From NCBI GenBank assembly GCA_965603825.1, contig CBFDEM010000020.1, positions 558,001 through 622,000 on the forward strand: DNA of 64,000 nucleotides, read 5' to 3'. A model generated the notes under the pieces. That model had not been told where the DNA came from. It made no database searches and saw only the letters and a program-made list of their open reading frames with translations. Origin of the DNA: Blepharisma stoltei ATCC 30299 (lineage: Eukaryota > Protista > Ciliophora). Of the stretch, positions 11,838-42,341 are shown one piece after another (position 1 is the stretch's first letter; each line of letters begins with the position of its first letter). The position numbers and the translations under genes are program-made.

Positions 11838-11919
11838 CGACACCTATGAGATTTGAACTCATGCGGGGAGACCCCATTAGCTTAGCAGGCTAACGCCTTA
11901 ACCACTCGGCCAAAGTGTC
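11838..11919 (-). tRNA. tRNA-Ser(GCU)
   Basis: Reverse complement GACACTT TGGCCGAGTGGTTAAGGCG TTAGC CT-GCT-AA GCTAA, long variable arm, GTTCAAATC T-loop, acceptor stem; followed by a T7 Pol III terminator (11831-11837). Confidence 0.95.
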
Positions 11920-33153: not shown

Positions 33154-35799
33154 ATGAAAAATTCGAGTTCATCTAGAGAAGTATATAAACTTGAAAATAA
33201 AATGATGGATCTTATTTATTCTCTTTACTCAAATACCGATAATGAAACATTATATAATGATATAACCCCAAGAGATTATCAACTAGAAATATTAGAGATT
33301 GCAAAAGCTCGGAATACAATAGCATTCCTAGATACAGGAACTGGCAAAACTTTAATCGCAATTATGCTAACTAAATGACTTTCAGGAAAAGCTGTATTTC
33401 TTACCCCCACAAAAGCTCTGATCGAACAGCAGGATAGTGTAGCTAAAAAGTTTAATATTCGATGCGACTGGCGGTCAGGCAAAAAAGGTGAAAGTTGGAA
33501 CTCTATAAAATGGCAAAATTGGATATCGAAATTTGATTTATTATTTTTAACTCCTCAGCTCTTTCTTAATTCTCTCCGTCATGGGTATCTTCAAATGGAG
33601 CAGTTTGATTTATTGATATACGATGAATGCCACCATTGCAAAGGGGAGCACCCCTATTTCTCGATTCAAACTGAATTTTATTTCACCTCTCTGAAAAAGC
33701 CAAAAATCCTTGGGCTCACAGCGTCACCAGTTGTTACTGGACCAAAAGAGATCAAAGAACTGAAATCAGAGCTTAGCGATTTATGCTTATTTTTGGATTC
33801 TGACTTTGCTCAAGTAAACCGACGCTCTGTCAATCAAATTGCAAGTCAGGCTAAAGTAATAGTTAAAGGAGTAGATCATATTTCTGAATGCAAATCTGAT
33901 ATTATTGAAGAATTAAGTCTAATTATGAAATCTAATATAAACATGAGAGACCATTTTGACTCTGCAAAAACTGTATTTGAAAAAATAGGTGAAATTGGAT
34001 TAAAATATTACTTGAGGGATTTTCCATATAAAAATGAATTATTACATTATTTTGAAACGCAACTTGAGGAAGGATATTCTGAGCTATTCTTAGAGCTTGT
34101 GCATTTATTAAATGAGCACTTTAGTCTTGAAGAGTCTAGCCAAGTAATCATTTTAGCTGAAAGAAGAGTAACGGTATGATATCTTGTTGATGCATTAAAT
34201 TATTTTAGCAATTTATATAACTTGAATATAAAAGCAGGAAAAGTAGTCGGAATAAATCAAGGATCAAGAAGTTCAGAGATATGCAAAATGAAAAATTCCA
34301 GCCATGAGTATTCTTTGGACGATTTCAGGCTAGGGAATATTAACGTCCTTGTAGCAACAACAGTTGTTGAAGAAGGGATTGACATTCCTTCATGCAATTT
34401 TGTCATTAGATATGATAGCCCGCCTAATAATTTAAGATCTTACGTGCAATCTAAAGGAAGAGCAAGGGATAAAGATTCAAAATTTATTGTATTGACTCCT
34501 ATGCACAATCAAGCCGAAACAATCGATTTGATAAGAAGATTTGATTATATGATAGTATTTCTCAAAAATTTAGCTGATAAACCTATAACTAAGCCAGAAA
34601 GAGGAATGACATCATATGTATCTTTTAAGATTCCAGAAACAGGAGCAACTATAAGCACTGCATGAAGCGAGCTGTGAGTCAAAGATTTTGAAACAGCGCT
34701 GAAAAAATTGACAGGTGAAAAAATAAAATATGAAACATCATATATCCGAGAGGTCTCAAAAGTGAAAGGATATTCGGGAATAGTTAAATTTCCTTCCCTT
34801 TTTTGTATTGAGGATGTCAAATCAAGCAGACTGTATTGCAGAGAAAATGATGCTTTGAAAGATGCTATTGTTCAGGCGGCTGAAGCTTTGTACCAAAATG
34901 AATTCATAGATGAGTTTTTATTTCAATGCATAGAAAAAGGATTAAGAGCTACTGACTCAAAACTGCGATATAAAAATTCAAAATCCAGCGTATGCAGCCC
35001 TTTTGATGATAAAGCTTATCTCGAACAAAACTCAATTGAAAAATTCATTGGAAATCTCGATAGTTTCTATCATATATACAAACTAATCATTTCTGATCAG
35101 CAAAGCGAGCTATCACTAGGATTATTTTCAACTGCAGACATTCCTGAATGTCCATTTGATTTATTTTCATCAAAATATAATATAAATTCTTCAATAAAGC
35201 AAACTCAAAATCCATCCAGAATAAGAATGCAGCTTATAAGAACTGAGCGCTTTGATTTGAAAAATCTAAGCATGGTTAAAGCATTTCATTTAACAATTAA
35301 TTCAATTTTATGCTCTCAGTTTAACAGAACAAAAAGAAATATTTACGAAGAGCATATTGGGAATGCTGTATCTGATTTAGAGATTCAAGTGCCATTGTGT
35401 GTAGTCCCAATTTTAGATGACAATATAAATTGAAATATAATTAAATCAAATATTCTATTTTTAAGAAATCCAGCCAAATTTGACTCGAAATCTTATGAAA
35501 ATCTTGCTCTGAAGCTTGATACCAATGACTTGTATATTATCTTAGATATTTTATTTGATTCCCCAAAACATGAAGTTTATAATAATAATTCAAACCTAGT
35601 TGCTTGTATTGAAAGAGAAATTAATGAAGAATATTTATCTGTTCAAAAGTTTGATTGCCATGCAAATACTCAAAAAAAATATAAGGAATTTTTAAGGCGC
35701 TCAGATTTAATTTTTAGCCCAATTCCTACGTATTTCTTGAATTTGTGCAGAATGCTTCCAAATATTATAAGTAAAATAGATGAATTTTTATTTGGATAA
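33154..35799 (+). CDS. Dicer-derived protein: DExD/H helicase, HELICc, DUF283-like and platform-like regions, no RNase III, 881 aa
   Basis: One frame with five TGA=Trp (33376, 34177, 34663, 34675, 35431). [56 protein letters not shown] and [10 protein letters not shown] are Dicer-type helicase motifs; TAA 35797-35799. Confidence 0.88.
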
Positions 35800-36059
35800 T
35801 TCCAAGCAGCTGTTAAATATTTTATTTTCCAAGCATGCTATAATTTATTTCTTATTGAATTTAAAATTCTCCAAATTAATTAAAAAGTAATTAATTTTTC
35901 CATTTAATATCAAATTCCCAGCAGATTAAAAATTTAAAAATTCTTCACCCTTTATAGAGCCGATACTCCACCCTAAAAATTCCAATGCATCATAATCTGT
36001 TTTTTATAAACATATCATATCAATAATACCCTAATCCTAGAAAAATATTCCAACTGAAA

Positions 36060-37179
36060 ATGAAGCCAGGACAACTGTATATTTCTATGTAGAATCGTAA
36101 TGAAGACCATGACTTGGGGCCGGGACTCACACAATTTATTCGACTATGAGTCAAGGAATTGCATCAAAAAGCAATTTCAAACATCAAGCCCTTGCCAAGT
36201 CACTCGCCTAGAGACCGATATCAATTTACTATTTTCTCAGGCAGATCTCAAGCGAGCCAGCTCACATCCCGATATTCTTGCTACTATATATCAAGAAAAC
36301 GGCTCATTTTATATTAAATCCGAAGAAGAGCCGCTCTGGCAGGTTGTAAGATCTTTGAAAACCAGTAGTGGGCCAGGCCATGTACTGCAAAAAGGCGACA
36401 CCATAAAACTAGGAAGAGCTTGCTATAAAATAAAAGATCTGAATTCTGGCAATGACGACTCTTCAAGTGATCGGACACAAGAAAGCGAAGAAGAGTCAAC
36501 AAATGAAATTCCTGAGGAGTATGAAAATGGCGTCTGTAGAATCTGCTTCTGTGAAGGCGAGCCTGGGAATCCTCTTATCGTACCTTGCAACTGTACTGGG
36601 TCTGTAAAGCACATTCACTTGCAATGCTTGCAGAAATGGCTGTCTTACCATATGTCATCTAAGCAGTGCGAAAATTCTGCAGTTTATCACTGGAAAACAA
36701 TTGAGTGTGAGTTATGTAAAGGCGTATTTCCATTTAGTTTAGGTATAAAAGGAAAAGATTACAATTTATTCCAAGTGGAAAAACCAGATATTCCTTATAT
36801 TGTTCTTGAAGCAGCTGGCCAAAACAAAGGAAATGAAAAAGGAGCGCATGTCATTACTTTTTCGCAGCAGTCCTCAGTTATATTGGGAAGGGGACATGAG
36901 AGTGATGTCAGGATCGCTGATATTTCAGTTTCCAGGTGTCATGCAATTATAAAGTATGAAAAGAATCAATTTGTCTTAGAAGATAACAACTCGAAATTTG
37001 GGACATTGCTGCAAGTAGCAAGGCCGATAGAAATTCCACTGAATAATACAGTTGCATTACAAGCTGGAAGGACAGTGATGGCTTTATCTTTAAAAGCAAG
37101 CAGCTCAAATATCAGTGCTCTATATGATGCGTCACTGGATGAGGCTGAACATTATGCTCCTCACAAAAGGTCTCTATAG
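36060..37179 (+). CDS. FHA-like plus RING-CH (RINGv) plus FHA E3 ligase, ~367 aa
   Basis: TWGRDSHNLFDYES N-terminus; GDTIKLGR; CRICFC...PCNCTGSVKHIHLQCLQKW...CELCK; GRGHESDVRIADISVSRCHA...SKFGT; ATG 36060 with 16-nt intron 36077-36092. Confidence 0.9.
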
Positions 37180-38576: not shown

Positions 38577-40016
38577 TTATTTTCTGTTCATTGATGCGAC
38601 AAATTCATCAAAGTCGACATAGCCGTCCTTATTACTGTCAGCTTCTGTTATGATATTTCTCCATTCTTCCTCAGAAACTTTATTTTTATAGTCAAGAACC
38701 TTTTTCAGGTCACTTTCTGCTATTTTTCCTTGAGAATTGATATCCAAATTTTTAAATATTTCAAACAAATTGTCTTTTGAAACGTACTTTGACTGCTCCA
38801 AACATAAAGTTAGAAATTCTGAATATGAAATTGTTTCTGAAAGCTCAGCGATTTTGCTGATTAGCCGATCTACATCGCCATGAGCATTCTTTATTCCTTC
38901 TACATGAGAAAATCCTTCCAGTAATTCTTTTTTACTTATAATTCCATCTCTGTTTGTGTCGAAAACTTGAAAAGCTTTGATGATTTCCTTTTCATCATCA
39001 GGCTCTATTGTCTGACTTATATATTCAGATACTACTTGAGAGAGCCCTGTTTGAGATTCATACTTTCTCAGTTTTCCAATAATACCAGATATACCTGAAT
39101 CCTTTTTGTTCGCTTGTACAAGTCATGGGTGAGTTAATGCTATAGAGGCTGAAATCCTAGCTATAGGGTCAATTTCAAGTAAATGCTGAAGCAAGAGAAT
39201 AGCTTGTGAAGAAATTCCTTTTAATTCTTTTAAATTCAACTGAAAAGGTCTTGTTTTTATTTCTTCAACGATTTCGATATCTGATTTACCTTCGTAAGGG
39301 ATATTGCCTGTGAGAAGGATGTACATTATCATTCCACAGCTCCATTCATCGCACTTTTCATTATAGTATCCCCTAATCATTTCTGGCGACATAAAGTATG
39401 AAGTCCCTTGCTGTCCCATCATCTTTTGCCCAGTAAGGAATGTGGATTTTCCGAAACCAACTAATTTAATATGCACTAGAGAGCCATCTTCAATTAAAAT
39501 ATGATTAGGGTCAATATTTCGATGTGCAATTCTTTTACTATGGAGATACGCAACCGTTGATAATATTTGTCTCATAATTATAGAAATTTTTTCTTCAGTT
39601 TCTTGAAATTCTCTAAGTTTATTAGTAAGCCTTTCTCCTTCACAGAAATCCATCACAATATAATGATAATCACCTGTTTCATTAAGCCCATAGCATCGTG
39701 GCAAATTTGGGTAATCAAGAACTTGCCAGACCTTAATTTCTTTTGGTCTTTCGATATTTTGATTTAATTGGTTCTCTGATTTGTTTTTGGAAATTCGCTT
39801 CAATATTCTTAACATTCTTGTAGATTTGTCTAAACATTTAAAAACTTCAGAGCGGTTGCTGCTTGAAATTAAAGTTACATCGGTAAAGGCTTCCAATGGA
39901 TCTTCTTGACGAATATTTAGAAGGGATTTAGGAATAACTTTTGAAACTGATAAGCTACTTTCAGACATTTTCATTGGAGCTGTAGCTCTTTTTGACTTGC
40001 TTTTAGTGCAGCCCAT
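38577..40016 (-). CDS. CDPK-like pseudokinase with EF-hands, ~479 aa
   Basis: MGCTKS; kinase fold with HRNIDPNH and LVGFG in place of HRDLKPEN and DFG; THP-W(TGA 39123); EF loops DTNRDG, DINSQG, DSNKDG. Confidence 0.85.
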
Positions 40017-42270: not shown

Positions 42271-42341
42271 TGGTTCTACTGAGAATTGAACTCAGATCTC
42301 AGGATTCAAAGTCCTACGTGCTACCACTACACCATAGAACC
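42271..42341 (-). tRNA. tRNA-Gln(UUG)
   Basis: Reverse complement GGTTCTA TGGTGTAGTGGTAGCACG TAGGA CT-TTG-AA TCCTG AGATCTGAGTTCAATTCTCAG TAGAACC A, followed by a T5 terminator. Confidence 0.95.

Follow-up and report, generated by a model that had tools for sequence, protein, structure and literature searches.

Dcrd of Blepharisma stoltei: a Dicer paralogue without RNase III that keeps a constrained helicase and an eroded PAZ cassette

Introduction

The macronuclear (MAC) DNA of the ciliate Blepharisma stoltei ATCC 30299 encodes, within a stretch of 64,000 nucleotides (hereafter the window; contig CBFDEM010000020.1 of assembly GCA_965603825.1, forward-strand positions 558,001 to 622,000), a real and intact gene for an 881-residue protein, Dcrd. 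This protein is a paralogue of the genome's full-length Dicer (Dcr) in which the whole RNase IIIa/IIIb portion has been lost and the helicase, DUF283 and platform-PAZ-connector scaffold has been retained. As it has no tandem RNase IIIa/IIIb domains, Dcrd is not a Dicer enzyme. Conservation, predicted structure and analogy with known helicases suggest, at a probability of roughly 0.6, that it is a non-cleaving, ATP-dependent Dicer derivative that binds or translocates on double-stranded RNA (dsRNA) and serves as an accessory in small-RNA pathways.

Neither the gene nor the idea of a divided Dicer is new, both having been published in 2023. In the SI Appendix of Singh et al. (2023, PNAS; PMC9942806), B. 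stoltei was described as having one Dcr and three RNase III-only Dicer-like proteins (Dcl1-3), an RNase III-less Dcr homologue of 881 aa was named Dcrd ('Dicer-derived protein', BSTOLATCC_MAC8391), and it was proposed that helicase and cleavage activities reside on separate molecules. Organism, length, absence of RNase III and hypothesis are all the same for the gene described here, and the two are identical; an earlier note on this DNA, made from the letters alone, was thus correct in recalling truncated Dicer homologues from Blepharisma. No literature on Dcrd later than Singh et al. was found. The published account gives the Pfam architecture only, without the platform-PAZ-connector fold, the eroded PAZ, the uneven conservation of the modules or the overlap with the Dcl N-termini (PMC9942806). 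The additions made here are the Dicer-like constraint on the helicase, the eroding PAZ ruler, the apparent PAZ-like N-termini of the Dcl proteins and the independent occurrence of comparable truncations.

An intact Dicer paralogue that ends before RNase IIIa

The searched genome (41.46 Mb in 64 contigs, with the window on contig C20) contains a single full Dicer, Dcr (1401 aa, protein P0001, contig C38), whose sequence agrees at 100% identity with a B. stoltei protein, and residues 39-880 of Dcrd are collinear with Dcr 32-945 (blastp, 33% identity over 920 columns, E 7e-139). The two differ at the C-terminus, where Dcr goes on through RNase IIIa (978-1119) and IIIb, whereas Dcrd ends at the end of the connector helix, about 30 residues before the position equivalent to RNase IIIa. 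No Ribonuclease_3 match was found by Pfam in the Dcrd protein or, in a Pfam search of the whole genome, anywhere on contig C20; the genome's matches are confined to the full Dicer on C38 and the three Dcl genes on C10, C53 and C3. The only helicase paralogue of Dcrd elsewhere in the genome is likewise the C38 Dicer. The architecture of Dcrd is therefore opposite to that of the ciliate Dcl proteins, which have the RNase III pair and no N-terminal helicase.

The Dcrd frame comprises 881 sense codons and a terminal TAA, has no introns, and is interrupted under the bacterial table solely by five TGA codons (codons 75, 342, 504, 508 and 760, at window positions 33376, 34177, 34663, 34675 and 35431). 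When TGA is read as Trp, the translation is identical, residue by residue, to database protein P0034 (881 aa), and codons 342, 504 and 760 coincide with Trp columns conserved in other ciliate Dicers. A frame of this length without TAA or TAG would be expected by chance with a probability of ~2e-22 at the base composition of this 33% GC genome, and an in-frame stop lies seven codons 5' of the ATG. Two 16-nt GTA..TAG strings inside the frame were considered as introns and rejected, since their lengths are not multiples of three and they lie in conserved coding sequence, one of them encoding the conserved VVPIL motif. The earlier note had read from the letters an intact, intronless frame followed by AT-rich spacer and an unrelated gene, with no intron to rescue the stop (these two strings being the sole GTA..TAG 16-mers) and no RNase III signature downstream, and all of this was borne out. 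Its further statements also hold, namely that the cut falls at a domain boundary, here that between connector helix and RNase IIIa, with all helicase motifs intact, and that ciliates encode RNase III-only Dcl proteins, of which Pfam identifies three in this genome.

The use of TGA for Trp was also compared among the genes. Five of the nine Trp codons of Dcrd are TGA, and the paralogues share TGA at an equivalent Trp, W342 of Dcrd (34177-34179) and W346 of Dcr. Similarly, TGA specifies the Trp of motif VPxxxxxI(D/N)W in Dcrd, in the Dcl gene on C10 (locus L004, Dcl codon 123) and in that on C53 (locus L005, Dcl codon 124).

Domain anatomy and predicted fold

Pfam was run on five separate stop-free pieces of the Dcrd frame, and later on the whole of P0034. 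Pieces 1 and 2 matched ResIII/DEAD, piece 3 Helicase_C and piece 4 Dicer_dimer below threshold, and piece 5 matched nothing; with UGA read as Trp, the result was ResIII/DEAD and Helicase_C, Dicer_dimer at E 0.004-0.02 (under the gathering score) and no Ribonuclease_3. The Dicer_dimer domain is significant in Dcr, and the DUF283 region of Dcrd is collinear with it. Motif alignment shows helicase motifs Q, I, Ia, II, III, V and VI to be intact. In sequence searches of the PDB the protein is closest to plant DCL3, DCL4 and DCL1, to AncD1D2 (the ancestral Dicer helicase), to animal Dicers and to RIG-I/MDA5, and its RecA-like domain 1 matches DCL3, AncD1D2 and RIG-I. No Pfam match was found in Dcrd to the RIG-I C-terminal regulatory domain (PF11648), CARD or other signalling domains.

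Each of the three modules has a confidently predicted fold. An alignment of 35 Dicers was used to build the AlphaFold2 model, whose mean predicted local distance difference test score (pLDDT) is 82 and which as a whole most resembles DCL4, Drosophila Dicer-2 and the ancestral Dicer helicase; the helicase superposes on the last of these (9mx5) with a target-normalised template modelling (TM) score of 0.71. The C-terminal module reaches a pLDDT of 81 when modelled alone and resembles the platform-PAZ-connector region of human Dicer, both by Foldseek (4ngf; TM 0.57/0.57, E ~1e-6) and by VIA-align (4ngb_A; Z 14.4, root mean square deviation 3.3 A over 200 residues, with the next unrelated folds at Z <8). 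In addition, hhalign aligns this cassette with its counterpart in 14 ciliate Dicers at 98.8% probability (E 8e-17). The segments that the earlier note had called platform-like and connector-helix-like were accordingly rightly named. All of the Dicer-type helicase motifs that it listed (DTGTGKT, DECH, TAS and QSKGRAR) are present, as is the motif that it quoted for a DUF283-like segment; the region collinear with Dicer_dimer of Dcr has a double-stranded RNA-binding domain (dsRBD)-like predicted fold and, as noted, a sub-threshold Pfam score.

Uneven constraint across the modules

The modules of Dcrd have diverged from Dcr to very different degrees. Constraint was counted over columns invariant in 14 full-length ciliate-type Dicers, each of which retained essentially all invariant columns in a leave-one-out control. 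The helicase of Dcrd keeps 79 of 85 such columns (93%) and is 44% identical to that of Dcr, DUF283 keeps four of five (30% identity), and the platform-PAZ-connector cassette keeps only 5 of 13 (20% identity). For comparison, Dcr and the Dicer of Stentor share 47% identity over the helicase and 32% over the cassette, so that the identity between the helicases of Dcrd and Dcr is close to that between the two full Dicers, despite a terminal branch for Dcrd of 1.27 changes per site. None of the six helicase columns lost in Dcrd lies within an ATPase or catalytic motif. This pattern suggests that the helicase is still selected for ATP-dependent handling of dsRNA.

The losses in the cassette fall on elements that full Dicers keep. 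An H...CxxC element, invariant in ciliate Dicers, is deleted, and the Tyr-rich Y..YY..KY motif, which in a profile search aligns with the PAZ motif of Arabidopsis DCL1/DCL3 and of Piwi, is replaced by EREINEEY; Dcr retains both elements, and Dcrd has neither. The connector helix of Dcrd keeps its conserved Pro and Lys positions. The cassette is therefore probably maintained as a fold and would no longer act as a ruler for RNA ends, and an eroded ruler fits the loss of the nuclease for which it would measure.

The H...C-x2-C element lies in the platform region (Dcr ~715-729; alignment columns ~115-135), is invariant in 14/14 full Dicers of the ciliate type and is possibly a zinc knuckle. To our knowledge, it has not been described.

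Origin and parallel truncations

Maximum-likelihood analysis of the helicase-DUF283 region places Dcrd within the heterotrich Dicer clade, alongside the full Dicers of B. stoltei and Stentor and relatives of these (support 99/99), on a terminal branch about double that of Dcr (1.27 versus 0.65). A clade of Dcrd and B. stoltei Dcr, as expected from a Blepharisma-specific duplication, was not rejected by the approximately unbiased (AU) test (p 0.32), and the tree leaves the placement of Dcrd within the heterotrich clade unresolved. Searches of 5.8 billion and of 1.84 billion proteins, and of metagenome contigs of the Joint Genome Institute (JGI), yielded no orthologue and nothing closer than the genome's own Dcr (33%), a negative that is weak because gene callers using the standard code fragment genes in which UGA encodes Trp.

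Comparable proteins occur in other lineages. Two RNase III-less helicase-DUF283 proteins, P0040 (687 aa) and P0041 (591 aa), are encoded by complete genes in one JGI metagenome (3300045971), with no nuclease downstream. They are 46% identical to each other and sister to a full Dicer of the same sample, P0036 (support 95/96), and because their sister is a different full Dicer, their truncation is, by its position in the tree, independent of that of Blepharisma Dcrd. The three genes of this sample (L013 4001-6064 and L014 2052-3827 for the paralogues of 687 and 591 aa; L019 2001-6221 for the full Dicer of 1406 aa) apparently belong to one uncultured eukaryote. A 690-aa protein of Paramecium tetraurelia (XP_001459306.1) has a similar architecture and is upregulated during MAC development (PMC9942806); it did not turn up in a word-based search with P0040. 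All of these are, like Dcrd, RNase III-less Dicer paralogues of ciliate-type lineages. However, P0040, P0041 and, according to PMC9942806, the Paramecium protein end right after DUF283, without the platform-PAZ cassette that Dcrd has. Together, these proteins suggest more than one origin of nuclease-free Dicer helicases among ciliate-type lineages.

N-termini of the Dcl proteins

Each of the three B. stoltei Dcl proteins has ~300 residues N-terminal to RNase IIIa, in a total length of 736-751 aa. This region is without Pfam annotation and gave no Pfam match to PAZ. Nonetheless, it gives a weak but collinear alignment to the platform-PAZ-connector profile (hhalign 57%, E 1e-4, 172 columns), and a VPxxxxxIDW motif is common to the Dcl N-termini and the Dicer cassette. 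The alignment is suggestive only, but on this basis Dcl1-3 seem to carry platform/PAZ-like N-termini of their own, and Dcrd and the Dcl proteins would therefore overlap rather than complement each other. Fission of one gene into Dcrd and a Dcl was rejected as a simple model on account of this overlap, for which the evidence is weak, with no PAZ recognised by Pfam. The Dcl encoded on C10 also has a weak C-terminal dsRBD match (E 1.7e-4).

Feature coordinates and neighbouring genes

The features of the Dcrd gene and its surroundings are listed in Table 1. Elsewhere in the window are a protein kinase gene at 39123-40016 (-) and two tRNA genes, tRNA-Ser(GCU) at 11838-11919 (-) and tRNA-Gln(UUG) at 42271-42341 (-).

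Table 1 Features of the Dcrd gene, its downstream context and the Dcl genes. Positions are those of the window, except for the Dcl genes, which are given on their extracted loci.
Feature	Position	Strand	Basis or remark
Dcrd coding sequence	33154..35799	+	Equals P0034; length as published for BSTOLATCC_MAC8391
Helicase RecA-like domain 1, aa 36-199; PRDYQ, motif I DTGTGKT, Ia FLTPT, II DECHH, III TASP	33259..33750	+	Pfam ResIII 1e-17, DEAD 1e-16
Hel2i-like helical insertion domain, aa 200-325, typical of Dicer/RIG-I-type helicases	33751..34128	+	AlphaFold2 helices, pLDDT mostly 80-96
Helicase RecA-like domain 2 and pincer helix, aa 326-474; motif VI QSKGRAR	34129..34575	+	Pfam Helicase_C 5e-16, PDB matches, motif alignment
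DUF283 / Dicer dimerisation domain, dsRBD-like alpha-beta-beta-beta-alpha, aa 488-600	34615..34953	+	Collinear with Dicer_dimer of Dcr; pLDDT ~90
Predicted disordered linker, aa 602-629	34957..35040	+	pLDDT <50
Platform-PAZ-connector-helix cassette, aa 630-881; predicted fold kept, PAZ Tyr motif and H...CxxC lost	35041..35796	+	hhalign, Foldseek, VIA-align
One of five TGA codons; conserved Trp of the VPxxxxxI(D/N)W motif	35431..35433	+	Alignment
TAA stop	35797..35799	+	Aligns at ~Dcr residue 945, ~30 residues ahead of RNase IIIa (Dcr 978-1119)
AT-rich intergenic spacer, 300 bp, without RNase III coding potential	35800..36099	.	Sequence and Pfam
Unrelated gene for a RINGv and FHA protein (context, outside the system)	36100..37179	+	Directly follows the spacer
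Dcl genes on extracted loci	L004 559-2811, L005 544-2751, L008 577-2829	-	Contigs C10, C53, C3 as set

Discussion

The properties of Dcrd are most readily accommodated if it works as a non-cleaving, ATP-driven module that binds or translocates on dsRNA, much as the isolated helicase-DUF283 portions of arthropod and ancestral Dicers do. As such, it would probably be an accessory in small-RNA biogenesis that engages or remodels long dsRNA, after which an enzyme bearing RNase III, either one of Dcl1-3 or Dcr, would make the cut, while the remodelled C-terminal cassette may serve as a structural or protein-docking scaffold in place of an RNA-end ruler. The closest known counterparts are the isolated helicase-DUF283 of AncD1D2 (PDB 9mw6/9mx5) and of Drosophila Dicer-2, which are the best matches to Dcrd 36-600 (E 1e-22 to 1e-23, target-normalised TM 0.71-0.76) and, according to their PDB titles, are self-contained ATPase modules that bind dsRNA. 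However, these are laboratory fragments or parts of an enzyme, whereas Dcrd is a natural stand-alone protein to which a platform-PAZ-connector cassette is added.

Several points weigh against this explanation. Intact motifs are no proof of ATPase activity, as vertebrate Dicer helicases retain the motifs and hydrolyse ATP poorly. The C-terminal third is evolving fast, and its low identity to Dcr (20%, with 5/13 invariant columns) could mean partial decay. As no orthologue was found, purifying selection on Dcrd cannot be measured by the ratio of nonsynonymous to synonymous substitution rates (dN/dS). Finally, the Dcl N-termini appear to be platform/PAZ-like, and this speaks against two halves that simply dock.

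The last point also bears on a strict form of split Dicer, in which Dcrd would be the obligate helicase/PAZ subunit and one of Dcl1-3 the nuclease subunit, the two jointly making the development-specific 24-nt scan RNAs (scnRNAs). Such a complex is consistent with a genome that has three RNase III-only Dcl proteins by Pfam beside an RNase III-less Dcrd, with a truncation exactly at the connector/RNase IIIa boundary and with the conserved Pro and Lys positions kept in the connector helix, and it was proposed by the authors of PMC9942806, who note that the Paramecium analogue is upregulated in MAC development. However, the alignment of the ~300-aa Dcl N-termini with the platform-PAZ cassette and the VPxxxxxIDW motif that they share imply domain overlap, and the eroded end-binding motif in the PAZ of Dcrd means that it could not supply the measuring end-anchor. 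Moreover, the Dcl enzymes of Paramecium and Tetrahymena do not need a helicase partner to cut dsRNA in vitro. An obligate two-subunit enzyme is possible but on the doubtful side. In sequence terms, the lost end-binding motif and H...CxxC element and the domain overlap weaken the picture of Dcrd as half a Dicer, and a stand-alone dsRNA sensor or translocase is an equally open alternative to it.

A more specific version of the sensor alternative takes Dcrd as a regulator like the RIG-I-like receptors or the nematode DRH proteins, recognising viral or aberrant dsRNA or aiding an RNA-dependent RNA polymerase independently of RNase III. RIG-I-like receptors and C. elegans DRH-1/DRH-3 are nuclease-free dsRNA-dependent ATPases of the same helicase subfamily, with Hel2i and pincer; RIG-I, MDA5, LGP2 and DRH-1 are strong matches to Dcrd in sequence and structure, and Dcrd too has constrained ATPase motifs and no nuclease. 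In contrast to these proteins, Dcrd has neither the RIG-I C-terminal regulatory domain nor CARDs nor another signalling domain, its C-terminus being a Dicer platform-PAZ cassette, and in the tree it is recently derived from a heterotrich Dicer and is not a RIG-I-like receptor. We also know of no such signalling pathway in ciliates, and a role of this kind is rather improbable. Less probable again is that Dcrd acts as a decoy or negative regulator, a nuclease-dead copy that competes with Dcr for dsRNA or partners through DUF283 and the helicase and so damps the production of small interfering RNAs (siRNAs). It is true that exactly the substrate- and cofactor-binding parts of Dicer are kept and the catalytic part is lost, but the ATPase site is fully constrained (79/85 invariant columns kept), which a decoy acting passively would not require.

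Least probable of all is that the gene is a duplicate decaying to a pseudogene, or an artefact of assembly or annotation whose transcript continues into RNase III exons. The long terminal branch, the fast-diverging C-terminal third and the lack of a detected orthologue would fit decay. However, this reading is already largely refuted by a frame open over 881 codons in a 33% GC genome (chance 2e-22), the 93% of invariant helicase residues kept, the confident folds predicted for the three modules and the content of the contig, which has no RNase III coding potential and an unrelated gene 300 bp downstream; the published annotation is, in addition, of equal length (PMC9942806).

A bolder reading, tentative and less likely than not, takes in the wider family. 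Ciliates may have split Dicer repeatedly into a free, ATP-driven dsRNA module (Dcrd and the helicase-DUF283 proteins of Paramecium and the uncultured relative) and helicase-less Dcl proteins, with the free helicase licensing or pacing in trans the production of germline scnRNAs during genome editing, as a natural two-component Dicer. If Dcrd does cooperate in trans with the Dcl proteins, it would constitute a natural experiment in which substrate selection and translocation by Dicer are separated from cutting, and would help to explain how ciliate Dcl enzymes process the very long germline dsRNA of genome editing.

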